Shown here piece after piece: positions 6,101-64,000 of a stretch of 64,000 bases of DNA. The position numbers and the translations under genes were made by a program. The notes below the pieces were generated by a model. It worked only from the letters and a program-made list of their open reading frames with translations, was not told where the DNA came from and searched no databases. Within the stretch, counting starts at the first letter, position 1, and the number at the start of each line of letters is the position of its first letter. Origin of the DNA: Macrostomum lignano. Lineage: Eukaryota. Location: NCBI GenBank assembly GCA_002269645.1, contig NIVC01000861.1, positions 310,001-374,000 on the forward strand, given 5' to 3'.

Positions 6101-6147
6101 GGCTGAAGATAGCGAAGATCTGGTGGGTTTTAAACACAGACAGACAA

Positions 6148-6181
<34 letters not shown>

Positions 6182-6195
6182 GGACAGACAGACAA

Positions 6196-6235
<40 letters not shown>

Positions 6236-6262
6236 ACGGACAGACAGACAGACAGACAGATG

Positions 6263-6293
<31 letters not shown>

Positions 6294-9200
6294 GGACAGA
6301 CAGACAGACAGACAGATGGACAGACAGACAGACAGACAGACACAACAACTCCCGCCATTCTGCAGGTGGCAGCCGAGCCCGCGGCCCCGGCGGCGGCGCC
6401 AGCGGATCCGGTGTCCTTCGACCAGCTGTCCCTGTCCACCCGCGGCCTGTACGCCGCCGGCGACTCCCTGCACCTGGTCACTTTCGCGCCAGGCGGCGGC
6501 GACTTCTACGTTCGCGGTGTTGAGCAGCTGGAGAGCGCTGGCAGCGGCCCGGTGTGCAGCCTGAGCGCCAACATCCGACACGCTAAGCTGGCCATCGGCA
6601 GCAGCGAAGGCGGCATCTGCCTGTTGAATGTCGACGATAGCGCGAGCTCCTCCTCGGCCGCCACGCAGCCGCTGTACCGCTGCCGCTCTGGCGGCTTTGT
6701 CGGAGCTGCCAGCCTGCCTGGCGGGTCCGGCGGCCTCGTTGCGGTGAGCTTTGAGCTGGTTGACCTTAGTTAATCCTGGGATTATCGTGTACTCAGATGG
6801 TTAATCCTGGGATTATCGTGTGCTCAGATGGTTCATCCTGGAATTATCGTGTGCTCAGATAGTTAATCCTGGAATTATCGTGTGCTCAGGTGGATTAGGT
6901 TAATCCTGGGATTATCGTGTGCTCAGGTAGTTAATCCTGGGACTATCGTGTGCTCAGATGATTCATCCTGGGATTATCGTGTGCTCAGATAGTTAATCCT
7001 GGGATTATCGTGTGCTCAGAAGGTTAATCATGAGATTTTTTGAGCTCAAATATTTTTGTGCCGCTGGGTTAACCTGAGATTATTAGTATGAAATAAAGCA
7101 ATATCGCATGATTAACATTCATTTAAAAATTTCACTTTCAGTCCGTCCGAGATAATGGTCTCGTCCAGGTGTGGGACTCGAACTCAGGAGGAGCCTTGCT
7201 GTCTTCGCTGGAGTTGGATGTTGAGGTAAGTCAGTCAGTCAGTCAGTCAGTCAGTCAGTCAGTCAGTCAGTCAGTCAGTCAGTCAGTCAGTCAGTCAGTC
7301 AGTCAGTCAGTCAGTCAGTCAGTCAGTCAGTCAGTCAGTCAGTCAGTCAGTCAGTCAGTCAGTCAGTCAGTCAGTCAGTCAGTCAGTCAGTCAGTCAGTC
7401 AGTCAGTCAGTCAGTCAGTCAGTCAGTCAGTCAGTCAGTCAGTCAGTCAGTCAGTCAGTCAGTCAGTCAGTCAGTCAGTCAGTCAGTCAGTCAGTCAGTC
7501 AGTCAGTCAGTCAGTCAGTCAGTCAGTCAGTCAGTCAGTCAGTCAGTCAGTCAGTCAGTCAGTCAGTCAGTCAGTCAGTCAGTCAGTCAGTCAGTCAGTC
7601 AGTCAGTCAGTCAGTCAGTCAGTCAGTCAGTCAGTCAGTCAGTCAGTCAGTCAGTCAGTCAGTCAGTCAGTCAGTCAGTCAGTCAGTCAGTCAGTCAGTC
7701 AGTCAGTCAGTCAGTCAGTCAGTCAGTCAGTCAGTCAGTCAGTCAGTCAGTCAGTCAGTCAGTCAGTCAGTCAGTCAGTCAGTCCCAATCCTATTAAATC
7801 GCAGGCTGCCTCATTCGCTGGCAATCCTACCGCCAACGTCGTGTTGGTGGGCGGCCGCGATGGCTCAGTGAGTGCTGTGGACCTCGGCAAGCCGCGGGAG
7901 CCGCGTCTCCTCTGCCGCCGCCAGCTGCACCAGGGCTGCCCGGTGGCCAAGGTTGTTGTGGATCCAACCGGGCGCCTCTTCGTCACCGCGGCAGCCGACG
8001 GTCGAGCTTTTGTCGGCTGGGCTCGTCCGTCGAAGTCGTTCGACATTCTCGGCGGGGTTTCGGTGCCCGGCCAGGTGCAGGACATGTCGGTCTGCGGTGT
8101 CGGTGGTGAAGACGGTGCAATCCAGGTGCTGGCGCTGGCCAAGCTGCCCGGACAGAACGATCCGGGTCACGTGACATTCTTCGAGATCAGCGACGAGTTG
8201 ATGAAGAGTGAGTGTTGGGCTCTGGCAAAGGGGACGGGCATTGGGAGGAGGGTAGTGGGAGGATGGTATTGGGAAGAGGGTATAGAGAGGAGGATATTGG
8301 GAAGTTGGTATTGGGAGGAGGGTATAGAGAGGAGGGTATTGAGAGGAGGGTACTGAGAGGAAGGTAAAGAGAGTAGGGTAAAGAGAGGAGGGTATTAAAA
8401 GGCGGTTATTGAGAGGAGGGTATTGGGAGGAGGGTATAGAGAGGAGGGTATTGAGAGGAGGGTATTGAGAGGAGGGTACTGAGAGGAGGGTATTGAGAGG
8501 AGGGTATTAAAAGGCGGTTATTGAGAGGAGGGTATTGGGAGGAGAGTATTGAGAGGAGGGTATTGAGAGGAAGGTAAAGAGAGGAGGGTAAAGAGAGGAG
8601 GGTATTAAAAGGCGGTTATTGAGAGGAGGGTATTGGGAGGAGGGTATTGAGAGGAGGGTATTGAGAGGAGGGTATTGAGAGGAGGGTATTGAGAGGAGAG
8701 TATTGAGAGGAAGGTAAAGAGAGGAGGGTAAAGAGAGGAGGGTATTAAAAGGCGGTTATTGAGAGGAGGGTATTGGGAGGAGGGTATTGAGAGGAGGGTA
8801 TTGAGAGGAGGGTATTGAGAGGAGGGTATTGAGAGGAGAGTATTGAGAGGAAGGTAAAGAGATGAGGGTAAAGGGAGGAAGGTATAGAGAAGGGGTTATA
8901 GATGGGGTAGATTATAATTCCTATATAGGAGTGTGGGCAGAGACACGAGCTACTTACAGGTCAGAAATCGCAGCTCATGTTCTCCCAAATCTATCTCCCA
9001 GATCCCGCTCGGTTCTATGGCCCCAATCGCGGCCTGTTCGAAGACGGCGCCGTGAAGCGCCAGGCCTACAGGCTGGACGCCAGTGGCTACGGCTGCACCC
9101 TGTTCGGCGGCGAGCGGCCCCGGTTCTACACCATCGGCAAGAGCACTCGCCAGCTGCTGCTGTACCCGCTGCCAACTAATCAGGTTTGTACTAACTATTA

Positions 9201-12200
9201 GCTTTAGCTAATTGATATAGACTTTCCGCCATAGAATACCTCAGGCTCTTTGCCATAAACTCTCTACTACAGGCTCTCAGCCATAGACTCTCTACCATAG
9301 ACACTACACCATAGACTCTCTACCAAAAACTCTCTACCATAGAAACTATACCACAGGCTCTCTGCCATACACTATGGATTCCAATTCATACCATGACGCT
9401 TATATTTTGTCAGTGTCCCACGAAACCAGCTAGAGGCATCTCCCTCTTAAATTCTGTTCGAATTTCAGCAGCAAAAGACCCAAGCCTCTCTAGCGGGTAT
9501 GGCGGATTTGGCCGCCAGAGATGCCAAGGTACAATGCGTACTTTAATTCCCTTTCCTTTAAGTTCTTCTATTGTCCGTTTTTTATGCGTGCGTCACACAG
9601 TTTTAACCTTAGTTTTTAAAGGCACATTTGATGTTTTTTATTTTACCCCTCCCAATTTTGTAGGAAAACTTTCTTGAAGAATTAAAGAAGGTATTTTTGT
9701 TGCCAAATTTTATTTCCTTAGTAACTTTTCTTAGAGTTTGAAGTTGATTTTTTGTTATAATTGCATTTCTCTGTCGAATTCACGAAGACAAAGTTATTGA
9801 ATTAAATTTTAAGTTGTTTAAGTTGTTTATTTTCAAATCGGTGCCAATTTTTCAAACCAGGCCGATATTTCCGAGGAAGAAAAACGACAGGTATACCATT
9901 CGATTATTTTCACTTGCACAAGACAGTTTTGAAAATCATATTTAGTAAAAGAAGTATTGGCTCTAATTCGATTTTTTATATTTTTAACTGGATTTATTTT
10001 ATTTAGCATCGTCCTTTTAATAATTTAAAACTTCTTTTTAGCTTCGAATCAAACAAGCAACTCTGCAACGCACGGAGGTAATTAGTAGCTAGTTCTTTTG
10101 TTTATTTTTTCTTCAACGGGCTAAAATGCTGGAAATACTACTGGAAGCATATCACAGGCGTTTTTGCTTGAAAATAAAAAAATTATCGAGTAATAAAAAT
10201 TAACGTCAACTTCACTGTAACTTTCAACAATTGTAAGACTCAGCGCAGACTATCAGTGGACATTGGTAGCAGTTTGGCGCAACAGTCGGTAAGTTACTGC
10301 CTAGAATTGAATGCCAGTTCAAGCAGAACTAGATTAAAGAAAATCACGGAAAATATTAACAAACTACGAGCACTTACATGTAGTTAGATTTGTTTTAATC
10401 ATTCGAACACTTCAGACGGATCTTTACTTGCAAAAAATTATTCGATCAAAAATGTGACAATAATATTATTTCAGTTCATGGAACTTTACAAGAAGGTAAA
10501 ATATTTATAAAAACCGTTTAAATTTGTTTTTGTTGATTATTTTTTTAATCAGTGCATGTTTAAATTTGCAAAACTTATTCAGTAAAGTATACGTATACTA
10601 TACGTATTGAGGCATGCCAACAATTTATTATTCAAAGTAGTTTAGTGTACAGAATTTAATTCCCACGCTAACTAAAATATCTGGACGATTTCTCATTTTT
10701 ATTCGTTTAGGCTAAACGAAGAATGTCAATGTTTGTTCAGAATATGCCCCAAGTCGCCCAGGTAACTATAATATTACGTATTGAACTGCACGTTTTTGTT
10801 TGAATTAAGTGCCAAATCAATATTAGTTAAATGAATTTGCTGGGATTTAGTGTTCAAAACTCCAATTCTGTTGTTCTGAATTTATATTTCGTGTGTGTAG
10901 TCAAGCATAATTAAACGAAAGAAAAAATGCTTGAATCAGGTCACAAAAAAGTGTCATCACAAAGACACCATTTTTTTGTTAAAATAGTTGAGAATAACGG
11001 CGCGGAGTTAAATCTAAATGTTATAATAACGATCACAAATTGGAACTCTAAAGTACATGTACTATGTACTTTTTTGCTACATGTGTACATGTATGTACGT
11101 TTGTCACTAAAGCTTGAAAAGTACAGCAAACTACGTCAGGTAATTTATACAATTAACCTAATTCTACAATTGAAATTACTTATAAACCACCGCACCGCAT
11201 CAACGCATCAATTAATTCTGCCACCGCGAAGATTCATCGCAAACACGAGGAAGAATCGGTAAATAAATCTAACCAGCATGCACTTTATACGCTACTTAAA
11301 GTGGCACAGAGGAAATATCGCTGAAAAACCTATTCTGTCGTTAAAAATCATGTTTAGATAGTGGATCAACCAATAGCTGAGCAGGCTCAAGAAGGGTTCG
11401 AAAATGTTGATGAGGTTTGTTTTAATCGAACTCGAACAGCAATTATTTAGCTCTGTATACTCACGTATGTCACTCGTTTGTTTAAAACGTTTTTGAATGA
11501 AAATCACAGGCATTTTTTCCATCTCCGCAACTGCTTTATTTTGTTGTCACCATTTTTTTCGATTGCGTCGTATGTTTAAAAGGTTATAAAAAGGTAAAAT
11601 TTAATACAAAAAATGAAAACTCGATCCACACAGAAGCGACAGCAACCTCAGCAGCACTTTGAGTCTCAGAGATCTGTGACACCCGAATCTGAGGTCGCTT
11701 TCACTAGCAGAGGCCCGAAGTCCTCCGTTGACTTGACTGCCTCTCTGCCGCAACGACAGCAGCTGCAGGGGCGTCAGGGCACGGCCCTGTGGAGGCTCAG
11801 CATGGCCAGTGTCAGCAGGCACTTGGCTCAGCAGAGAGCTATTGAGGAGGCAGTGAACCAGCGCCCAGATGAGGTGTCCCCAGCAGCCCTTACAAAATTC
11901 TGTTTTTTTAGGCGATCCAATTTATTTACAAGCTAATTAAAGCAAAGTTAAGCTTTTATGAGCCTTGATTGCAAAACTTCAAATTTGTGGGATGGAACAA
12001 TTGTATTTAAGCAACCAATTTACAACAAATCAACGTTTTCCATAAATTTATTTACTGCAATGGACCTGCGGGCTGTTGAAATTTTGCTTATTATTTTTTT
12101 ACAATCTCTTTTTCACGTGTTGCTTTTTATTTATTTAAACAAATGCATACGCAATATCACGCAAATTTTAGAAGCAACAGATTTTGATTTATCGTTTTTT

Positions 12201-15200
12201 TGCATTTTGATTTGCTTGAAGTATCTTCTCAAATCGCACGCGAATGTTGGATCAAATTTACTTTGATTTTAACTTTAATTTGAATTTAATGCAAAACATA
12301 CTCGTACTATAATAAAATCGCAGGACGAAGTGCCCGAAGACCAGATTTTATCTGCCAACGTTGCCGCTTCTCCCGAAGTTTTTGCCGAGGACTCCGAGAT
12401 GCAGCTGAAAATTCATCTATCTAAGCTGGCTCTGCTGGTGTACGGTTGCGACGGTCACGTGACGGTGGTCGACTTAGAGAAGAATGCAAGCGATGCTTTC
12501 TGTTGACCGTTGATCTGGAAATACACAGCTGACATCCACCCACGCCTCTGCCCCTCTGCCCTAGATAACTTCTTTCCCGCTCTTACACCAGCTGACATCC
12601 ACCCACGCCTCTGCCCCTCTGCCCTAGATAACTTCTTTCCCGCTCTTACACCAGCTGACATCCACCCTACGCCTCTGCCCCTCTGCCCTAGTCCCTAGAT
12701 AACTTCTTTCTCGCTCTTACACGTACACCAGCTGACATCCACCCACGCCTCTGCCCCTCTGCCCTAGATAACTTCTTTCTCGCTCTTACACGTACACCAG
12801 CTGACATCCACCCCACGCCTCTGCCCCTCTGCCCTAGATAACTTCTTTCCCGCTCTTACACGTACACCAGCTGATATCCACCCACGCCTCTGCCCCTCTG
12901 CCCTAGATAACTTCTCTCCCGCTCTCACTCCGACACCCACCTCACACCTTCATTTGGTTACTATTATAATATTTACGTGCAGGAAGTCGCCGTCAAAGTG
13001 CGCGCCCACAGCTACACCAACGGTGGTGTGCTATCCGCAGCATTGTCGCTTGACGGCAAGTCTCTACTAACTACCGGATACGACGGCAGCCTGTGCCGAT
13101 TTTCTGTCAGGTGAGAATGGTGATTGGGAAGGAAGATAGAGAAGCAAGACGGGGAAGGAAGGTGGGAAAGAAAGATAGAAAGAGCCTGTAGCCAATAGCG
13201 ATCTCCGCACATCGCACCTCGTCCACGTTCGCACCCCCGCAGGCTGCCAGACGAGCTCTCCGCCAAATTTACCGACTGGGAGCTGGCCTTCAGCTCCGAC
13301 CGGATGAGTGCCATCACCGCCGAGAACGAGGCATCGGCCGGAATGCCGACGTGGACCCAGCCGACCGAACGGCCTGAACGACGAGTTTCCGAGTGCGATG
13401 ACGACGGCGCGGCGTCTGGAACGTCCTCAGCTCGCCGGGTCTCGAACTCGACCTGGCTGCACGATCAGGAGCGCGAAGCCCTGACAGAGGAGGATAGAAA
13501 ATACGCCGACAAGAAGACCGAACTGCGCGACAGGCTGTCGGAGATGCGCAGCCACATCAAAGCCATGGTGGATAAAAATGCTGCCGAATCGGACGAGTTG
13601 GAGAGGCTCGATCCGCACGAGTTCGAGCTCGACTTGGACGAGCAGGCCAAGTTCGGTCAGGAGACTGATAGTGAGGTGCGAAAGCATTCACCGTGTTTTC
13701 AAGTTCAAAGTTCAGAGGATTTTATTTAAGGGAATGTTTTTGATGAGGATTTCCTAGGAATACAGAGGATCCAATGGATAGGGAGTTTCTAGGAATGGGA
13801 GAATCTCATTAGGGAGATTCTAGGAATGGGATAATCTCATTAGGGAGATTCTAGGAATGGGAGAATCTTGTTATAGATTTTCTAGGAATGGGATAATCTT
13901 GTTAGGGATTGTCTAGGAATGGGATAATCTTGTTAGGGATTTTCTAGGAATGGGATAATCTTGTTAGGGATTGTCTAGGAATGGGATAATCTTGTTAGGG
14001 ATTGTCTAGGAATGGGATAATCTTGTTAGGGATTTTCTAGGAATGGGATAATCTTGTTAGGGATTTTCTAGGAAAGGGATAATCTTGTTAGGGATTTTCT
14101 AGGAATGGGATAATCTTGTTAGGGCTTTTCTAGGAATGGGATAATCTTGTTAGGGATTTTCTAGGAATGGGATAATCTTGTTAGGGATTTTCTAGGAATG
14201 CAGGAATCTCATTAGGGCTTTTCTAGGAATGGGATAATCTTGTTAGGGCTTTTCTAGGAATGGGATAATCTTGTTAGGGATTTTCTAGGAATGGGAGAAT
14301 CTTGTTAGGGATTTTCTAGGAATGGGAGAATCTTGTTAGGGATTTTCTATGAATGGGAGAATCTTGTTAGGGATTTTATAGGAATGCGAGAATCTCATTA
14401 GGGATTTATAGGAATGGGAGAATCTTGTTATAGAGTTTCTAGGAATGTAGGAATCTTATTAGGGATTTTATAGGAATGCGAGAATCTCATTAGAGATTTT
14501 CTAGGAATTACAGAATCGCATTTGATAGGGATTTTGAAAAGACGGGAGAATCCCATCGATGTGGATTAGGGAAAATATGAATGATTATCGCATGGCTCAT
14601 CCGCTAACGCAGGTGGCCAGCGTTCGCAAGCGCATCGGGCTGGAAAATCTGGCCAAGAAGTTCCTCGCCGAGGTCATAAAACGCGAATGCTGGGAAGAAA
14701 TGGAGGTCAAAGGTCGCAGTATTGTAACGTTCGGCGCCCCCCTAGAGGTGTCGAACTACCCGCTGAGACCGCAGACTAAAGAAGAGCAGGATCGACTCGA
14801 TCAGGTTGCCAAGCGGCGAGTGATAGAGATTCAGGAGGCCAAAGACAGGCGCGAGCTGCTGGACTCTCATAGCAAGGATCAGCAGGTAACTAAAGCGTTG
14901 GAAAAATTCTAATCAACACATTTTTGTTGCTTTTTTCATATGCTCCTACTTACGAGTCAGTGACAAGCAGTATTCCGCAGGTTTTTAAAGAATTTCATAT
15001 TAATTATTACTTAAAAATATGAGAAAATGATATAGTCTCGGTTGCCTTTTGCTAATATTTTTACTTACGAGTCTAGTGACGAGTAGTATTCCTCAGACAT
15101 AAAGCTAAATCGTAGTAGTTTACATGAAATTGCTAACAACAATTCGTTACAATTTAAAGCCGCTGGAAGATGCCATTAAAACGCGATTCAACCTGAAGGT

Positions 15201-26226: not shown

Positions 26227-27828
<1,602 letters not shown>

Positions 27829-33337: not shown

Positions 33338-36300
33338 CATAGTTGCCACACCTGCGCTATTTTAGCGCTACTGCGCTATTTTGTTTCAGCTGCGCTACTG
33401 CGCTATTATCTTTGAAATGCTTTCAATTCTGCGCTAAATGAGTTTTATAGTTACACTAAGTCAACATTGTTTCCCTTCCTCTAAGTCTAAGTCAAAGCAC
33501 ACTCTTTACTTTCTTTAGAATTGTGTAGAAAGAACTAAAATAGATGCAGTCAGTCGGGGCTTGCCACTTGGCCTTACCCATCCCTTAGTCTGGTGGGGTG
33601 TTGCTGATTGGGGCCCTGATCGGATACCCCAAGTTTCAAGCCCTACCCCCCCCCCTCCAAAATGGCCAATTCCTATTGGCTTAGCAAATAGTCAATCCCA
33701 CTCACCCCCATGGGTCTGCTTTTTATTCCACTTTAAAATCAAAACATGTTATCGAACTTAAACTAAATAAACAAGAAAGTGTCTGAGTCCAGACATAGAG
33801 TTCTTGTATCAAGGACAAGCATAATGCCTCTTAAAACAAAGCCAAGTCAACGAGGCACAAAATGGGACAAGGATTGGCTACAAGAAAAAGACAACTCTGG
33901 CGTTCTAATCTCTAAGTGGTGTCAACAAGACAGAATTGAAGGCAAGGCCTATTGCAGGGCCTGCTCCAGGTCATTCTCAATAATGCAGCATGGAATCAGC
34001 GCGATTCGTCAGCACGCTGATGGACAAAACCACAAAATTCAAATATCTGCTATTGGTCAACAAAAGACCATGACAAGTTTCTTCTCGGTTATGAACGACG
34101 ATCCAGCAAAGCAAGCTGTGAGTTCGACTACTATCAGCGAGCAAGCAATGGCGGCCAATTTGCGTTTTTCATTACTGGTGGCCCAAAAGGATCTGTCATT
34201 TAACCTAATGGACCAGTTTACATCGCTGCTTCCGGTTGCATTTCCGGACAGTGCTATTGCTCAGCAATTTGCCTGCTGCAGAACTAAAACGACCTATCTT
34301 GTTAACGAGGCATTGGCACCGTTCGCAAAGGAGCAAATGTTTGACCTTCTCCGCAAGTCGCATTTCTCCATTATGCTGGATGAGGGCACTAAACGTGATC
34401 GCTCCTACCTGGCAGTACTTGCAAGAGTATTCTCCACTGAGCACCAAAATGTCCCAATTGTAATGATTGGCATCAAAGAGCTGACGGACAGCACTGCTGA
34501 AGGAATGAAGACAGTTGTTAAGGAACTACTTCGTGAAGGGAATATACCTGTTAAGCATGTTCTCTCGGTGATGACTGACTCATGCAATGCAATGCGAGGT
34601 GAGCAATTGCAGAACTAGCTTGTTCTTTTATATGAATGTCCTAATTACCTATAATAATAAGTATGTACTTATAATGAAAGTTTGTGACTGCTACATGCAC
34701 TACTATTTACATGTCTCTACTACTGTCTCTACTATGTCTCTACATGTACATTTGCTATTACTACGCTCGTGCGAGTAGTAGCAACTGTCTTATATTATAG
34801 AAATAGTATACTAGTAAGTAGTAACGTACGTGATACAGTAATCTAACAGTTAGCAGTTTTTTTCACAACCTTATTACAACATGTGAATGACATGATGACT
34901 TTGTAAGTTTTTATGGAATGTTTAATGAATAAAACTATTTATCCTAACATTCCGAAGGTCAAAACAATGGCCTGCTTGCTAAACTGAAGGAGGAGCTACC
35001 GCACCTAATCGATGTTGGCGGGTGTAGCCTACACCACGTGCACAACGCTGTCCAATATGCGGTAAAGGCTTTGGACTCTTCTGGAGAGACAGAAGGACTC
35101 CTGGATGATGTTTATAACAATTTTCGGTTCAAAAGTCGACGCAAAGCCTTCCATCAGGTATGCCTCTTGTGCGAACAAAGTTTATTTCTGGTTTTAAGAA
35201 TAAGAACAATTACAAATACATATATTCTGTCTTTGTGATACTTTTATCCAACTTAACTGAACTTCTGTCGGGCATAATTTATTGAGATAATAAAAAGATC
35301 ATAGTAAGTACACCATAAAGCAAATGAGCAAATTATAGCAAAATGCACATGTTCTTTTACCTATTACTATCGCTGATAGTGATATCATCAGTTTGTTGCC
35401 CCTGAACTCTATGAATAAATGCTTCTAGTTCTCTCCATATTATTCTAAACAGTACCGCTCATATTGCTCTGCCACCCACTGTTGCATTTTAGATTCAGAC
35501 AGCACTGAATCTGACTGAGCATGCATTTATCCGCCGAGTGGAGACCCGTTGGCTCCAGGTGCTAATAGTGGTGCGTCGTATTCTCGAGCAGTGGCCTGCG
35601 CTGCAGCAGTTCTTCTCAAACCAGCAGAACATTCAGAATGACCGAGCTCGCCGCATCAGGGAGGCCTTGACCGACAAAGCTCTAGCACGCCTCCAGTTTC
35701 TCGAACAAGCTTTGCCCAGGTGCGAGAAGATTGAGAAGCTATTTCAAAATGAGTCTACTCAGGTCCACCTTCTTTCATCGTCACTGGACGATCTCTGCGG
35801 CTGCATCCTGACGTGCTTTGTCCGAGAAGACGTTGTTAATGAGACCAACTCTCTGTCAGACCTCGCCGATCGTGCCAAGGAACGCTCCAATCAGTTGAAC
35901 AATGCAAGTCTGGTGATTGGTGGCAAGACCCGTGAGACTGTCGACAGACTGTCGCCAATTGATCGCATTGGATTCTACAAGAGCGTTCGCGATTTCTATT
36001 GTGAGTTAGTGCAGAGGCTTTTTTCATATCTGCCACTGCAGAACAAGATCCTCCGAGCTCTTCGCTTTGTCGACCCTAACTATCTACTCGGAGAGGACTT
36101 CAACTTCGACAGAACCGTGTTAAGGGTCGCCAAAACGATGAGCACCGTCATCGCAGTTGATGAGCTTGATGAGCTGCGTCTCGAAGTCACCAGGTTGCGT
36201 GTCTCAAACTCGGAGCTCGAAAAGTCGAATCCTGAGAAGTTCTGGTCATGCCTGCCCACTGCGACTTACCCGCTGCTATCAAAGCTAGGGCGCAGTGCAT

Positions 36301-37344
36301 GCTGCATTCCGCATGGCAACGCGGACAGCGAACGGTTTTTAAAGTGGTTGGCCAACGACTTAACGAAGCAGCGGAACAAGCTTTCCGAGTTTACGCTCAA
36401 CTCTCTGCTCACTATCAAGACCTGGCTGAAGGCAAATTTGGCCACTGCACATACAGTCACAATTGAACCAAGCCTAATTGCCATTGGCTTTGAAGCCCGA
36501 AGTAAAGCGGCTGATCGCGCTCGATTAGAACAGCGGCAGCAGGCGATGAAGAGACTGCAGAAGAAGATGGAGGAACAGCGCGCGATTGAAGCTGCAGCGA
36601 AGAAGGCTCAAGAGGAACAGCAGCAGCAGGAGGAGGATTTAGTGACGCAGCAGCAGACTGTTGACGAGATGCGAAGGAAGGCGCAAGAAATGCTGGCAGC
36701 TGCATCGAAGGCGGAAGCTGCATTCCGAAAACGGCTTAAGCGACAGAGCGTGTCCAGTCAGCCTAGGGGCGGTAACAAAATTGCGCGAATCGAAGGTGCT
36801 ACTGCCGCCGGACCCTCTAACAAGTGAAGTGAACATTGAAATTTTTGCTAGTTTGACTTTTATGTTAACTGAGCTGACGGAGAGTTAGAACTTAGTTTGA
36901 TTTCAAAATAAAGAAATGAGTTTAAAATCGAAATCAATCGACTATAGTGACAGATGCTTTTTACAAAGCGATTCCGGAACCAATAGAAGAAAAAATGTAA
37001 CTAATAATTGTTAAGAACATAATAAAGTAAGAAATTCGTACGATTTTAAAACTACCTTTAGTAAGTCAAGCCTTTCCCTAAAGTTATCAAATATCGTCTA
37101 GGCTTTTTCTCGTCTAGGAGCTACTCGAAAATAGTTAGTAACTGATATAAGTTTTTTATTATCATTTCGTTACTCAAATAAACAGGTTAATGTAGCTTTT
37201 CGGTTTCCTAAGACTTGACTTACTATTATTTATTAATCCGTGGTTGCTTTTTAATGATTACATAACTTTAAAACTAAATATTTTACGCTGCGCTAAATCT
37301 TTTCTGCTGCGCTAATATTCTTTTATTTTCCTGTGGCAACTATG
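33338..37344 (+). mobile_element. Full-length autonomous hAT DNA transposon (4007 bp)
   Basis: Perfect 13-bp TIRs CATAGTTGCCACA / TGTGGCAACTATG; perfect 8-bp TSD CACTTACG at 33330-33337 and 37345-37352. Subterminal TGCGCTA repeats at both ends; internal transposase gene. Confidence 0.95.
33824..36827 (+). CDS. hAT transposase, about 769 aa, 3 exons
   Basis: Exons 33824-34598, 34958-35157, 35493-36827. N-terminal C2H2/BED-like finger (CRAC...H...H), catalytic D (SIMLDEGT), D (VMTDSCNAM), CxxH (CSLHH), ETRW, and the C-terminal dimerisation region with E (GNADSERF). No internal stops. Confidence 0.92.
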
Positions 37345-45774: not shown

Positions 45775-48700
45775 CCTCTTTCATACATTGACCCACACTC
45801 CAACACCGTCCAGGTTGCCATGAAGAAGTTCAACGAGCCGCCCGACGTGGAGCTCCGCGAACTCCGCCATCTGGCCAGCCTCCGTCATCCTAACGTAGTC
45901 CGCTTCATCGGCTGCATAGACTCGAACATCTCTTTAGTGATGGAGTTCTGCCAGCACGGCAACCTGTTTGATTATTACAACAACCCGGCTAATTGCATTT
46001 CGGCCGCCAGGGTGGCTGACTGGGCCAAGCAGCTGGCGGACGGCATGGCCTATCTGCACTGCAGTCGCATTGTTCACGGCGATTTAAAGAGTCCAAATAT
46101 TCTATTGTGCGAGCTGGACACGCTGAAGATATCGGACTTTGGTTTGGTACGCCTGCCGGGCGAGGCTGACCAGAGGCAGCAACAGCAGCAACAGCAACAG
46201 CTCTATGGCACAGTACGCTGGATGTCGCCGGAGCAATGTCGACAAGAGATGTGGAGCTATCCTGCTGATGTGTTCAGCTACGGTGTAATCCTGTGGGAGA
46301 TGCTGTTTCAAGAGGTGACTTTTACTGTTGTTACTGTGTTCTGTCGTATGAGGTCAAATCAGGTGTAGCAAAAGCAGTAGGATGAAAATTGTGTTGTAGG
46401 TCAAATAAGGTCATCTAACCAAATCAATCGGGTAGGTCAAATGAGGTCATCTGACCGAATCAATTGGGTAGGTCAAATGAGGTCATCTGAACGAATCAAT
46501 TGGGTAGGTCAAATGAGGTCATCTGAACGAATCAATTGGGTAGGTCAAATGAGGTCATCTGACCGAATCAATTGGGTAGGTCAAATGAGGTCATCTAACC
46601 GAAACAATCGGGTGGGTTAAATGAGGTCAACTGACCGAATTAATTGGGTAGGTTAAATGAGGTCATCTGAATGAATTAATTGGGTAGGTCAAATGAGGTC
46701 ATCTGACCAAATTAATTGGGTAGGTCAAATGAGGTCATCTGAACGAATTAATTGGGTAGGTCAAATGAGGTCATCTGAACGAATTAATTGGTTAGGTCAA
46801 ATGAGGTCATCTGAACGAATTAATTAAGTAGGTCAAATGAGGTCATCTGACTTACAGGTATGAAATTTAAATATCCCTGACAATGATGTCAGTAAGTTCA
46901 TCTAAGTTCACATGACAGACCAGCTGTGTAAATCAATCGAGGTCACCAAAAATCATATCATCGCATTGCTTCGTCCAACCTCAGGTGCCCTACCGCAGCG
47001 TGGACCCCTGGGCGGTGGTGCTTGGCGTCGGTCAGGGCACCCTGTCGCTGCCGCTGCCTCGCCACACGCCTGGCATAATGCGCACCCTTATGGAGGCCTG
47101 CTGGGCCTGCAAGCCGAAACAGCGGCCGGCATTTCGCAATATTGGCCGCTCGCTTGAGGCCAGCCTGCTGGATCTGCTGGTGCTAAGCGATGGCGATTTG
47201 CGTATCCTGCGGAAAGCCTGGTCAGCTGAGATTGCCAGACAGCTGTCCTGCATGCGGCAGGAGGACTTCAAGGCCAAGCTGGAGGCCGACCTGATTCGAA
47301 AACGGAAGGAGGAATTGCAGCACGCCCAAGGTGTGTTTGAATAGAGATTGGGTATCGATTAGTCCTCGTTTGACCCTCAATTAGCGTCCTTGACCTTCTT
47401 GTCCTCATTCGACCCCTAATTCAGTCTTTGGTCCCTATTTAGCCCCTAATAGTCCAATGTCCTTATTTGACCCTAAAAGTGTCATGTCCTCATTTAACCC
47501 CATACTGTCGTGGCCTCATTATCCCTTAATAGTGTCGTGTCCTCATTTAACCCCTAACATTCTCGTGTCCTTATTTGACCCCTAACATTCTCGTGTCCTC
47601 ATTTGACCCCTAACATTCTCGTGTCCTCATTTGACCCCTAACATTCTCGTGTCCTCATTTGACCCCTAACATTCTCGTGTCCTCATTTGACCCCTAACAC
47701 TGTTGTGTCCTCATTTAACCCCTAACAGTCTCGTGTCCTCATTTGACCCCTAACAGTGTTGTGTCCTCATTTATAAACCCCTAACAGTGTTGTGTCCTCA
47801 TTTAACCATAACAGTCTCTTGTCCTCAGTTCTTTCGCATCCTCGTTTATCCAATATCGTGCCCAACACCAAATTCCCAATCGAACACGCAAATCCCCCCC
47901 CCCAGAGATTCGCCAGCACTACGAGAAGCGCCTGCATCGTGTCGACGACCTCCAGATGGACCTGACCAATCTTCGCATGCAGTTGCAACTGCAGGCCCGA
48001 GCGGAGCGCGATCGTTCCGCTAAACTGCGCTCCATGATTCGGCGCCGCTGTTGCCGCGCCTGCCAGCAGAGTCTGCGAGCCGTCTGCTCCCGCCAGCAGC
48101 TGTCGGCAGCCGTTGTCTTGGACCAGCCGCTACTCGACGCCACCAACGCGCACACCGCTGTCGCCGTCGCTGCTGCCGCGTCGATGGCCACCGACTCTTC
48201 AACAAAAACTCTGCCGCAATCTTCTTCGACGGAACAGGCGTCATCAATGTCGCCGGACCTCGGCGATCGCGGCGGCCGGCCCAGGCGGGCCAATCGGCGA
48301 CTGTCAAAGGCGCTGACGCTACCAGCTGGCGGCGTTGCCGCCGCTGCCGCATTGTTCCGACGGGGTGGCGCGCCGCCGCCCCCTCCGCCGTCACAACCAT
48401 CGGCCAGGTAAGGACAGTTGACCCCTACGTAGATTTTTTTCCTCAAATGACCCCTGGATAGATTTTTGTCCTCAAATGACCCCTACGTACATTCTTGTCC
48501 TCAAATGACCCCTAGATAGATATTTGTCCTCAATTGACCCCTACGTACAGTTTTTTCCTCAAATGACCCCTAGATAGATCTTTGTCCTCAATTGACCCCT
48601 ACGTACAGTTTTGTCCTCAAATGACCCGTACATAGATCTTTATCCTCAATTGACCCCTACGTACAGTTTTGTCCTCAAATGACCCGTACATAGATATTTG

Positions 48701-57042: not shown

Positions 57043-60000
57043 GAGTTAGTTAGCTAGTTATTCAGTCAGTCAGTTAGTTACTAAGATAATTAGGTAGACA
57101 GCTATAGTTACCAAGCTAGATAGTCTGATAACTAGTTAGTACATACTATACTCACCAATAATTCGTTTCCGCTGCCATGGAATGAGGACCAGTTTCACCA
57201 GAATCGAGCAGATGATTCCAACGCCAAACGAGGCTAAGATGGCTCCCCACAATGGGATCACGTGGAAGTAGAGGCCTGGGGTTTTTAATAATTGTTTCAG
57301 AAGTTTTTCTCGGACTATTCTTTGGCACTAATGAAGTTCAGAAGCAGAATGTTAATAACTCACTCTCAGGTCCTTCGTACACGGTTGAGAATACGTTGAT
57401 AGCGATGGTGACACTGTAGATTAGTGGCAGGAATCGGAGTCCAGGTTCCAGTGCATCTGGCTGCGAGTGGGGTGGATAGGTAGGAAATAGGTTTGGTAAA
57501 AAAATTAGGATAGATAGTAGGTAGGTAGTTGGGTAGTTAAATAGTTAGATAGGTAGGTAGGTAGGTACATGTAGGTAATGAAAATAATTGATTACACCTG
57601 CCTTAATGGGATTTGCAACCGACAGCTCAGCCGCAGCTATTGCGCGGCGCATCTGAAGGCTGCGTACGGCTGTTCAGTCCAAGGACTGGGGGGTCGCCAC
57701 ACACCCTCAATTACCCCAGCTAATGCTGGCACCCATTTTACAGCTGGGTGAACTGAAGCAATGCAGAATTAAGTGTCTTGCTCAAGGACACTAATTGTTC
57801 TAGTGGGATCGGGAATCGAACCCCCGACCTTCAAGTCGTGAGTCCGACGCTCTAACCACTAGGCTGCAACATTTTAGGTAGGTAGGCCAGGTCAGGTAGG
57901 TAAACAGTATAGGTAGTTAGGTAGGAGGGTAGGTATGTAGGTAGGTAGGTAGGTAGGTAGGTCAGGTCAGGTCAGGTCAGGTCAGGTAGGTAGGTGGGTG
58001 GGCAGGTGCTTCTATAGACATATCCGCTCAGCATATTTTAAAAATTTTCATGAGTGAGCAATGCTGAGTTATTAGTTAGACAAATAAAAAATACATTTAT
58101 AAAGCTTTATAATCACCTTTGTTAGGATGAAGACTTTAATAAAGTAGAACAGGGCTATGGAAATTCCGCCACTCAGCAGGGGCGAAATGAACCAGGAGGC
58201 CACTGAAAATCGGATAAGTCAATATGATTACCTAAAAATAATAAAACTTGGCTATAACTAAAATTCTTACACAATTGGCTAACAAAAAAGTTTTAAGCTG
58301 TAAAACGATAAGATCCGCTGAAATTTGAGCTATTTGAGAGCACAGAGAGCTATACGAGAAAAATTTAAAATAAGTCTGACTAGCAAAGACCTAAGCGTTT
58401 ATTAGAAACCAGCTTCCCCCGACCAGATAATCTGATTCAGAACTCCATGGCTCCAAAATTGCAGATGGTACAAAACACCCTGTAGCCCTGCGATTTTCCA
58501 GACCGCTTGGTCCGACATGCACAATTCGAAATTGAGTTTTCAACTGTTGAATTAAACTTTTTCCAAACTGCATGACGAACGAATAAGTGGGTGGGGGGGG
58601 GGTGCGCTGCTGAAATGAGATAAGCCTGGTTTGAATACAGCTTGAATCAGACTGCGCTTAGATACAAGCTCTAAAACCGTGCAAGGGTATTCTTCAAACT
58701 GATAAAGGAATGCCATTGAAGTGTCAGTTCTCCTGTCAAGCTGTCATCTCCTATCGTGATTTAAGGATTGCCTATCCTGACCCAAGAATTGCCTATCCTG
58801 ACCCAAGAATCTCTCATCCTGATCCAAGAATTGCCTATCCTGACCCGAGAATTGCCTGTCCTGACCCAAGAATCTCTCATCCTGACCCAAGAATCTCTCA
58901 TCCTGACCCAAGAATCTCTCATCCTGACCCAAGAATCTCTCATCCTGATCAAGAATTGCCTATCCTGACCCGAGAATTGCCTGTCCTGACCCAAGAATCT
59001 CTCATCTTGACCCAAGAATCTCTCATCCTGACCCAAGAATTGCCTATCCTGACCCGAGAATTGCCTGTCCTGACCCAAGAATCTCTCATCCTGACCCAAG
59101 AATCTCTCATCCTGACCCAAGAATCTCTCATCCTGACCCAAGAATCTCTCATCCTGACCCAAGAATTGCCTATCCTGACCCAAGAATCTCTCATCCTGAC
59201 CCAAGAATTGCCAATCCTGACCCAAGAATTGCCTATCCTGACCCAAGAATTGCCCATCCTGACCCAAGAATTGCCTATCCTGACCCAAGAATCTCTCATC
59301 CTGACCCAAGAATTGCCTATCCTGACCCAAGAATCTCTCATCCTGACCCAAGAATTGCCTATCCTGACCCAAGAATCGCCTATCCTGACCCAAGAATCTC
59401 CCTTCCTGACCCAAGAATTGCCTATCCTGACCCGAGAATTGCCTGTCCTGACCCAAGAATCTCTCATCCTGACCCAAGAATTGCCTATCCTGACCGAGAA
59501 TTGCCTGTCCTGACCCAAGAATCTCTCATCCTGACCCAAGAATCTCTCATCCTGACCCAAGAATCTCTCATCCTGACCCAAGAATTGCCTATCCTGACCC
59601 AAGAATCTCTCATCCTGATCCAAGAATTGCCCATCCTGACCCAAGAATTGCGTATCCTGACCCAAGAATCTCTCATCCTGACCCAAGAATTGCCTATCCT
59701 GACCCAAGAATCGCCTATCCTGACCCAAGAATCTCCCTTCCTGACCCAAGAATCGCCTATCCTGATCCAAGAATTGCCTATCCTGACCCAAGAATCTCCC
59801 ACCCTGAGACAAAGCAACTAGCTGCAGCATCTCCCAATTGGAAGCTGTCACCACTTACCGATGAGGCCCAACCGGGCCCAGTCCACTCCTGTCTGCGCGT
59901 TGGCCACAAGAGCGAAGCCCACGGTGGCGCCAACAATGGAGTGAGTGCCGGACACGGGCACACGAAAGAACGTAGCAACCAGCAGCCAGATGCAGGTGCC

Positions 60001-60336
60001 AGAGAGGCTGGACAGCTGGCCTATCATGAGCAGCTGAGATCCGGTTGTACTAGTCCCATTATTATTCAATTCAACGTAATAGTCGGTGTCTATGATGCCT
60101 TTTCGAATTGTCTCGGACACTTTCGCACCGAGTAGGACGGCACCGGCTGTCTCAAATATTGTTGCCAGAATGCAAGCCTGCTTCAACGTCAGCACCTTGG
60201 AGCCGACCGACGTACCAAAACTGTTAGCAACGTCGTTCGCCCCGATGCCGAAGGCTAGTACGAAAGCGATGATAAACCCCAGCACCACAATCCAGAGGTA
60301 CTCCTCCGGGATTCCTAGAAAGCCGCTGGTGGTCAT
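54231..60336 (-). CDS. SLC20A1: Sodium-dependent inorganic phosphate transporter, SLC20/PiT family, 513 aa
   Basis: Exons 60336-59859, 58202-58117, 57460-57364, 57275-57156, 56328-56207, 55719-55322, 54471-54231 (1542 nt, phases consistent). Signature motifs GANDVAN and [34 protein letters not shown]. Orthology to A1 versus A2 is not resolvable. A 5'UTR intron probably spans 60377-60662. Confidence 0.92.
54890..55212. repeat. SLC20 intronic minisatellite, 24-bp unit GGGTAGAGGATTGAGTAGACAGTT
   Basis: Directly visible. Confidence 0.92.
55768..56042. repeat. Degenerate repeat containing five TGACGTCA palindromes
   Basis: TGACGTCA at 55791, 55829, 55868, 56012 and 56033, plus TGACGCC variants. 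Confidence 0.7.
56362..56645. repeat. (TTAG)n microsatellite
   Basis: Directly visible; continues after the SINE at about 57000-57080. Confidence 0.95.
56646..56937 (+). mobile_element. tRNA-derived SINE with MIR/CORE-like central domain (copy 1)
   Basis: Pol III A box TAGCCTAGTGG, B box GGTTCGATTCC; central GTGTCCTTAAGCAAGACACTTAA...CAGTT...CTGTAAAATGGG; second copy nearby. Confidence 0.88.
57589..57870 (-). mobile_element. tRNA-derived SINE (copy 2, inverted relative to copy 1)
   Basis: Its reverse complement aligns with copy 1 over nearly the full length with only scattered differences; flanked by (GTAG)n. Confidence 0.88.
58755..59800. repeat. SLC20 intron-1 minisatellite, 21-bp unit CCTGACCCAAGAATCTCTCAT / CCTGACCCAAGAATTGCCTAT
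   Basis: About 50 units. Confidence 0.95.
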
Positions 60337-62824: not shown

Positions 62825-64000
62825 TTATAGCAAATTATTTGAAATAAACCTGAAGAATTTGCCAAACGCAAAACTCCTCAAAGCCCGCATCAGTCGCCGT
62901 AAGGCAGAAACACTGAAAGCAAATACCGTTTCCATAGCAACAGCTCCAAAGTGATGTTTTCTCTCCTGGCCAGCCTGTCGAGGGTGCGGCAAGCGGACGA
63001 ACTCAACGAACGGATGCCGGCCAAGAGCTCGAATCGCCTGACACGTCATGGTGGGCTTCGAGCACCCGGTGCTGGTGTGAGGCTGATAGTGGCACTGCCG
63101 CATCACGTCGGATTTGTACTGCCGCCTGAGAAAGCGCAGAGGCCGCCTTGGGGAGGGCAGCAGCAGACCGGGGCCGAAAGGCCTCCAGCTGAGCGGATAG
63201 ACATCCTCAATAGAAAATACCCTGGGCTGTTCCAGTCGGATAAACCAGCGACCGGAGTTTCGGATTAGAAACAGGTCGACAGCAAGTAGGCAGGACTTGG
63301 TGCCGTTCACCAAGTCGCACCGGATCCCGAGCTTCCAGTGCATGTTCAGCGCCTCGGTGTCTAGAAATAAATACGTCGAGCTTTTAGAAAGCTCCTCGAG
63401 TAGGTAGCGAACCTGCGACTTTTGATCCACTCTGATGCCGAAGTCGAAATCGTCGTCCCACGGCACCAGGCCGAAGTGCCGCACCGAGCCGATCAAGCTA
63501 CCATCAAGTAGGAAAAGTTCCAAGCCCCTACTGGTGAAATTGGAGAACAGGTGGCCCAGCTGCCTGTACACCTCGGCCATGTCTCTTGAGTTGGCGAAAT
63601 GCCTGAAGCAGTTGGAATCATTCAAAATTCTGTTGGCAGTTATTGGCGCAACAGCTTTGGCGCACGACTCTGACGTCAGATTGGCCAGGTCGACTGGCGT
63701 TTCCAGCGTAGCGTAGAAGCCCGGCTTGATTGGCAGCTGTCTGCGCACTTCAGCCTGATCTGCGGTCACCTCTGCTAGACGATCCAGCAGGTTACTATGG
63801 TAACAAGCGTCGCTGACGGTTGGCTCTATCAGTTTCGAATCGCTGTCAATGCCCCACAACGAGCTGCCCAGTAGCTGGGATCGCCATTGCAGCATTGGTG
63901 AAATTGGCTGAACAAGTACAGGCTCAGGAGCATTACCACGGCATCGGCTATCACTGTTCCTGGCCGAAGGAGACCCTTTGACAGGGTTGAAAGTAACATC
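62825..64000 (-). CDS. LicD-family (fukutin/FKRP-like) nucleotidyltransferase-fold protein, 5'-partial
   Basis: LFLLDGSLIGSVRHFGLVPWDDDFDFGI fits the LicD GTLLGAxRHxGxIPWDDDxD signature; downstream VDLF and VYPL...F motifs. The frame stays open for 35 more codons from 63895 to the window edge. Confidence 0.82.
   Translation of the reverse strand, partial: DVTFNPVKGSPSARNSDSRCRGNAPEPVLVQPISPMLQWRSQLLGSSLWGIDSDSKLIEPTVSDACYHSNLLDRLAEVTADQAEVRRQLPIKPGFYATLETPVDLANLTSESCAKAVAPITANRILNDSNCFRHFANSRDMAEVYRQLGHLFSNFTSRGLELFLLDGSLIGSVRHFGLVPWDDDFDFGIRVDQKSQVRYLLEELSKSSTYLFLDTEALNMHWKLGIRCDLVNGTKSCLLAVDLFLIRNSGRWFIRLEQPRVFSIEDVYPLSWRPFGPGLLLPSPRRPLRFLRRQYKSDVMRQCHYQPHTSTGCSKPTMTCQAIRALGRHPFVEFVRLPHPRQAGQERKHHFGAVAMETVFAFSVSALRRLMRALRSFAFGKFFRFISNNLL

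Follow-up and report, generated by a model that had tools for sequence, protein, structure and literature searches.

Arrays of small symmetric cassette exons in conserved structural genes are an already known kind of arrangement. The classic combinatorial case is the 5' region of fast skeletal troponin T, where small symmetric cassette mini-exons encode a charged variable segment of a conserved cytoskeletal regulator. The eMIC-dependent (SRRM3/4) micro-exons of neurons and photoreceptors are likewise very short and symmetric; they alter surface loops, often in cilium-related genes, and are usually single, with a UGC motif near the 3' splice site. In schistosomes, protein variants are known to arise from the micro-exon architecture of the micro-exon genes, or MEGs (bioRxiv 10.1101/2023.06.21.545858). 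Here we compare these systems with an intron of the axonemal gene CFAP43 in a 64,000-nucleotide (nt) stretch of Macrostomum lignano DNA (contig NIVC01000861.1, positions 310,001 to 374,000, forward strand; hereafter the window), in which eleven candidate exons lie in a row. CFAP43 and CFAP44 make up the tether and tether-head complex that restrains and regulates inner dynein arm I1/f (PMC5921572, PMC5921573, PMC6208767), and loss of CFAP43 in humans leads to sperm flagellar defects (PMC10521949).

Our preferred reading, to which we give a probability of roughly 0.6, is that most of these eleven segments are CFAP43 coding exons, at least partly optional, which together would form a charged loop with helical propensity and two RRxS sites.

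The host gene and its candidate exons

By homology, the plus-strand gene that extends from ~3.8 to 24.3 kb of the window is CFAP43, as an initial annotation had proposed. Its C-terminal part matches the CFAP43 chains of solved axonemes in the PDB (8j07_i6, 9d2f_Y and 9fqr_H8; E = 4.9e-92), and the Pfam family of the C-terminal coiled coil, CC_Cfap43 (PF25828), matches above its curated cut-off (Table 1). The local exon chain was rebuilt from the sequence as 7805-8207, 9002-9183, 12324-12485, 12983-13110 and 13243-13675, and we checked that the frame is kept where the first of these exons joins the second. Host exons measure 128-430 nt, and the phases of the host introns nearby are mixed (1, 0, 0 and 2). 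The intron between 9183 and 12324 is phase 0 at both ends, and splicing straight across it gives a normal product, as the initial annotation had also stated: the resulting 436-residue model without insert is collinear with mouse and human CFAP43 (432 versus 423 residues, E = 2.6e-19), so the 209 amino acids (aa) encoded by the candidate exons would be extra relative to mammals. On the basis of the flanking WD-like strands and of the alignment with the solved chains, this intron is predicted to sit between blades of the second WD40 beta-propeller.

The candidate exons are segments of 60, 27, 30, 36, 51, 21, 51, 27, 27, 57 and 240 nt, each preceded by AG and followed by GT, all with lengths that are multiples of three (3n) and all stop-free in phase 0. 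We recovered every one of them with the coordinates, boundaries and lengths first reported; joined, they form 627 nt, a run of 209 codons uninterrupted by a stop, and their translation is identical to the peptide first given. The sub-introns between them span 92-450 nt at 24-41% guanine-plus-cytosine (GC) content, and the candidate exons range from 26 to 60% GC and are richer in GC and purine than the 31%-GC intron. The micro-exons are purine-rich, and candidate exons 1 and 11 stand out clearly as GC islands. With phase 0 and 3n lengths throughout, any exon or the whole block could be skipped without a change of frame, and inclusion is probably at least partly optional.

The splice matrices that we used were generic, so absolute scores mean little and it is the contrasts with controls that count; some thresholds were chosen with the annotated exons in view. 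The donors, described at the outset as mostly strong, all rank among the 20 best of the 157 GT sites in the intron under the generic donor matrix. Six of the acceptors score reasonably. At candidate exon 5 an in-frame alternative acceptor at 10244 (giving 45 nt) outscores the one at 10238, and at candidate exon 11, where the acceptor is uncertain, there are in-frame alternatives at 11643, 11670 and 11760.

The segments had originally been picked by eye, with a warning of selection bias, and we therefore built tests that do not use those choices. First-order Markov shuffles of the intron contained on average 2.5 symmetric, stop-free, signal-bounded candidates, with chains of 1.8, against 12 candidates and a chain of 8 in the real intron at the same thresholds. 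When windows of 3140 nt were slid over all 64 kb on both strands at three threshold settings, the array intron gave the longest segment chain at each setting (12-14 at the two laxer ones), and AT-rich control windows gave a mean chain of ~3 and a maximum of 7. Finally, each donor above threshold was paired with its best-scoring acceptor 15-90 nt upstream, the frame being ignored. Twelve of the 19 pairs in the intron were 3n and stop-free, and of the 698 pairs elsewhere in the window 125 were (17.9%; binomial p = 1.6e-5); the enrichment, a check proposed in the initial annotation, thus goes beyond selection bias. This frame-blind pairing recovers nine of the listed exons, exon 5 among them through acceptor 10244, and also the donor of exon 11, there paired with the in-frame acceptor 11832. 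Chance as an explanation of the array is rejected by the shuffles, the sliding-window chains and the frame-blind enrichment.

The predicted 209-aa insert is rich in Q, E, A, S and R, with 33 K+R and 30 D+E, no Cys and few aromatics, and is helix-prone over most of its length. Both 51-nt exons carry an RRxS motif at their start, RRLS in exon 5 and RRMS in exon 7; a pair of such motifs is improbable from composition alone (p = 0.008). Pfam searches with the insert and with exon 11 gave no match, nor did an Rfam search over 8800-12700. No DNA repeats were found among the exon-intron units other than a tandem repeat of 14 nt and chance matches in AT-rich sequence, and recent tandem duplication of such units is therefore not supported.

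The insertion point in other CFAP43 proteins

We compared the linker at this position in MAFFT alignments of 40 CFAP43 homologues longer than 1100 aa. It comprises 9-33 residues in all 36 long homologues other than those with large inserts and 9-20 in mammals and most other animals, which bears out the short human linker stated in the first description of the array. Large linkers occur only in flatworm homologues, with 88 residues in Opisthorchis felineus (TGZ61543.1), 82 in the long form from Schistocephalus solidus (A0A0X3NXU8) and 77 in Hymenolepis microstoma (CUU00485.1), next to the 209 of the window; an insert of ~130 residues is found at the same site in Echinostoma caproni (VDP70024.1). 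At the homologous position, just past the '…L-P-x-x' strand in the second propeller and before the next blade, orthologues from trematodes and cestodes have 73-130 additional residues. The phase-0 intron itself appears to be old and conserved.

The Opisthorchis exon before the site ends in phase 0 (…PSSR/gtaagt), and the homologous intron (L003 24657-33825, with the acceptor immediately ahead of 33826 not pinned down) contains a 255-nt exon followed by a 12-nt micro-exon, both phase 0-0 and bounded by AG and GT. The micro-exon (L003 32187-32198; cttgaag/GACAACACACAA/gtaagt, encoding DNTQ) has a clean acceptor, and the deposited protein can be reproduced only if it is included. The Echinostoma insert is a single 321-nt exon, also phase 0-0 and bounded by AG and GT, in a homologous intron that starts at L005 1457, and there too the flanking exon on the upstream side is phase 0. 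For the cestode inserts (73 aa, or 219 nt, in Schistocephalus and ~77 aa in Hymenolepis), only protein sequences were compared. Two Schistocephalus proteins, A0A0V0J2R4 (1415 aa) and A0A0X3NXU8 (1488 aa), share identical 288 N-terminal and 1127 C-terminal residues, and their sole difference is the 73-aa insert at the CFAP43 insertion site, which is the signature of a cassette. The Schistosoma mansoni CFAP43 protein has no insert, and none was found when its homologous intron was inspected; no exons of the RRxSxF type were found in the homologous introns of trematodes.

In Smith-Waterman comparisons against shuffles, the window insert gave p = 0.011 with the Echinostoma insert, 0.07 with Schistocephalus, 0.69 with Opisthorchis and 0.77 with Hymenolepis, and the weak similarity to Echinostoma falls on exon 11. 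We searched for relatives with the conserved coiled-coil CFAP43 exon as query, and the best matches were a contig of ENA ERZ25878582 (79%), the gastropod Batillaria (64%), Opisthorchis (61%) and the hemichordate Glandiceps (60%). Over longer stretches the window CFAP43 is nearest to slowly evolving spiralian and hemichordate sequences and less near to the flatworm ones, so common descent with the flatworm inserts is not established.

The contig that is closest in the conserved exon (ctg82254 of ERZ25878582; L001 and L002 here) is a 36-kb eukaryotic genome fragment with CFAP43 in a metagenome assembly. Its gene caller read TGA as Trp, and its 'proteins' consequently run through introns. The homologous intron is phase 0 and 484 nt long (L002 6014-6497), and it holds one well-signalled, symmetric candidate cassette of 66 nt (tttttgccag/…/gtcatt) that encodes HKAKRRSTFKKNMAKGEQNSME. 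Candidate exon 7 of the window resembles this cassette (KAKRRSTFKKNM; p = 0.004 against Markov nulls). Homology of the two is not upheld, as the score is ordinary relative to real L002 windows, and the cassette is retained as a lead.

The array had been described as lineage-specific. This holds for the ten micro-exons, which have no detectable counterpart elsewhere, and does not hold for the insertion site, which is common to trematodes and cestodes and perhaps to L002. In the literature on CFAP43 and microexons we found no description of a CFAP43 insert; such inserts are present in database models.

The array and other features of the window

The positions of the host exons, the intron and the candidate exons are collected in Table 1.

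Table 1. CFAP43 features in and around the array intron (window coordinates)
Feature	Position	Strand	Remarks
CFAP43 exon upstream of the array intron	9002-9183	+	ends in phase 0, donor CAG/GTTTGT; aligns with human/mouse CFAP43 residues ~560-640
CFAP43 phase-0 intron housing the candidate array	9184-12323	+	3140 nt; 31% GC outside the candidate exons; T-rich
14-nt tandem repeat, first sub-intron, non-coding	9238-9386	+	repeat search
Candidate exon 1, 60 nt	9469-9528	+	GC 0.58; tandem CAGCAG acceptor, alternative start 9472; recovered in the frame-blind test
Candidate micro-exon 2, 27 nt, ENFLEELKK	9664-9690	+	strong acceptor
Candidate micro-exon 3, 30 nt	9861-9890	+	AG/GT, phase 0, splice-site scoring
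Candidate micro-exon 4, 36 nt	10042-10077	+	donor GAG/GTAATT
Candidate micro-exon 5, 51 nt, RRLS site	10238-10288	+	weak acceptor; strong donor TCG/GTAAGT
Candidate micro-exon 6, 21 nt, FMELYKK	10475-10495	+	least secure; out-of-frame acceptor 10416 scores higher
Candidate micro-exon 7, 51 nt, RRMS site	10711-10761	+	best acceptor and best donor of the intron
Candidate micro-exon 8, 27 nt, LEKYSKLRQ	11113-11139	+	acceptor weak, donor strong
Candidate micro-exon 9, 27 nt, IHRKHEEES	11232-11258	+	acceptor weak
Candidate exon 10, 57 nt	11358-11414	+	acceptor weak
Candidate exon 11, 240 nt, 80 aa	11634-11873	+	GC island 0.60; modest donor GAG/GTGTCC
CFAP43 exon downstream of the array intron (DEVPEDQ…)	12324-12485	+	starts in phase 0, ends at GC donor AAT/GCAAGC
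CFAP43 exons matching PF25828	18132-18470, 19921-20289, 22155-22457	+	E = 8e-33, 8e-19, 7e-30

Beyond the original list, the array intron contains two more symmetric, stop-free AG…GT segments, one of 39 nt (10901-10939) and one of 84 nt (11510-11593), the latter being hydrophobic and T-rich and looking spurious. The CFAP43 intron at 12485-12982 has an apparent GC donor, no GT donor keeping the frame into exon 12983-13110, and its body is a minisatellite of ~60-nt units (12520-12920). Micro- and minisatellites fill the CFAP43 introns and much of the window (6130-6350, 7200-7790, 8220-8870, 9238-9386, 12520-12920 and many others); they include (CAGT)n-like runs, a 14-nt repeat and a ~60-nt repeat, and they give rise to long spurious open reading frames (ORFs) in six-frame translation.

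Just downstream of CFAP43, in convergent orientation, lie exons of an EF-hand calcium-binding protein (Pfam EF-hand_1/6/7; 26227-27822, minus strand) that by eye resembles PDCD6/ALG-2 or sorcin. Of two long ORFs at 33779-36827 (plus strand), the second encodes a hAT-family dimerisation domain (PF05699); the locus is probably a hAT transposon or a copy of one that has been domesticated. Exons of a protein kinase (Pkinase / PK_Tyr_Ser-Thr) follow at 45820-47344 (plus), and those of a PHO4/PiT-type phosphate transporter and of a LicD-family protein lie at 59848-60336 and 62825-63895, respectively (both minus).

Alternative explanations and described systems

Several observations weigh against the reading of the segments as optional CFAP43 exons. 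The exons are a well-supported prediction from sequence, and the exon models of Opisthorchis and Echinostoma are themselves database gene predictions. Five acceptors (10238, 11113, 11232, 11358 and 11634) are weak, candidate exon 6 is missed by the frame-blind test, and for micro-exons of 21-36 nt stop-free status carries little information. The GC content at third codon positions is 0.47 in the micro-exons, clearly under the 0.61-0.85 of the host exons (exon 11, 0.66); such low codon bias would fit young or optional exons and is also a mild argument against exons. The spliced insert with its flanks matched none of 5.8 billion protein clusters. Sequence likeness to the flatworm inserts and to the L002 cassette is weak, and the score of that cassette against exon 7 is no outlier relative to real L002 windows, which include charged coiled-coil exons.

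If the segments were pseudo-exons or decoys, that is, exon-like intron sequence arisen by chance or the remnants of former exons, they would remain outside stable mRNA. That they are known from DNA, that several acceptors are weak, that short segments are easily stop-free and that no protein homologue was found would all suit this explanation, which we nevertheless regard as highly improbable in view of the frame-blind enrichment, the top rank of the chain within the window, the GC islands at exons 1 and 11 within a 31%-GC intron and the real extra exons that flatworms have in this intron. The segments might instead belong to a separate transcript unit, either a nested same-strand gene starting at ATG 9499 in exon 1, or one with an internal start at ATG 11613, or an alternative terminal exon in which read-through of donor 11873 to a stop would yield a truncated CFAP43 that lacks the coiled coil. 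The ATG in exon 1 is in frame and has G at -3 and +4, an open frame leads from ATG 11613 through exon 11 to a stop codon that ends at 11936, next to an ATTAAA, and the exon 11 donor is modest. However, the exon 1 acceptor is usable and in frame with the upstream host exon, the exon 11 donor is in frame with the downstream host exon, and all segments hold the host phase, which a nested gene would not need. Chance alone would be expected to produce an ATTAAA in sequence of 30% GC, and protein and Pfam searches gave no evidence of a homologue, nor was evidence of a promoter found. We therefore consider a separate transcript very unlikely.

A further alternative accepts the exons as real and takes the 209-aa loop to be always included, merely split into many small phase-0 exons. 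Opisthorchis, Echinostoma and Hymenolepis do include their inserts in the sole sequence on record for each, the donors in the window are good, and nothing in the analysis shows skipping in the window's species. Yet twelve phase-0 introns in a row would be unusual given the mixed phases of the neighbouring host introns, optional exons more typically show weak acceptors and low codon bias, Schistocephalus has both forms, and the direct splice yields the canonical protein. Constitutive inclusion thus seems unlikely to us, and we continue to favour real exons that are at least partly optional.

Under this favoured reading, the spliced-in exons would lengthen the short linker between blades into a loop of up to 209 aa, a charged and probably helical or disordered arm with sites of the protein kinase A (PKA) type (RRLS and RRMS). 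Optional inclusion would give CFAP43 isoforms that differ in the length of the tether-head loop and in phosphorylatable sites, and, more speculatively, such a variable arm could modulate the contact of the tether head with the I1/f dynein. A bolder version, which we hold only tentatively and think doubtful, is that the conserved intron is an old hotspot for cassette exons that has here grown into a combinatorial module of ten micro-exons, which would place PKA-type sites and a helical arm on the tether head beside the I1 motor, and that sperm, epidermal and sensory cilia tune I1 by isoform. If the exons are used, the locus would be a natural case of splicing reshaping the surface of the tether head, with up to 209 aa and two PKA-type sites added where most animals stay short. 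Standard ORF-based annotation would miss nearly the entire module, and the same CFAP43 intron is worth inspecting in other spiralian genomes.

The likeness to schistosome MEGs drawn in the initial annotation stands for exon architecture only. Like the window array, MEGs contain runs of symmetric 3n micro-exons between introns, and skipping keeps the frame. However, MEGs are small secreted proteins encoded almost wholly by micro-exons and belong to the parasite gland and tegument, whereas the array is a module in a large conserved axonemal protein without a signal peptide. Most of the coding sequence of a MEG lies in symmetric micro-exons of up to ~81 nt, a form that only the insert has here, and in both of these defining features, exon content and secreted product, CFAP43 departs from a MEG.

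The array also differs from eMIC-dependent micro-exons, in that it is clustered and the UGC is mostly absent near its acceptors: by eye, TGC occurs within ~20 nt upstream of 2 of the 11 (9861 and 11232). Troponin T is similar in its adjacent small symmetric exons, but the gene and system are different, and combinatorial use is documented there and hypothesised for the window. The flatworm CFAP43 inserts share both the gene and the site with the window, and the Opisthorchis and Echinostoma loci share with it the same phase-0 intron holding 3n phase-0 extra exons (255 and 12 nt, and 321 nt). Those inserts are polar, basic and rich in S, T and Q, and Opisthorchis even has its 12-nt micro-exon. 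They differ in scale: the flatworm inserts comprise 73-130 aa, from one or two exons in the two trematode loci, whereas the predicted insert of the window comprises up to 209 aa from eleven candidate exons, ten of them of 21-60 nt.

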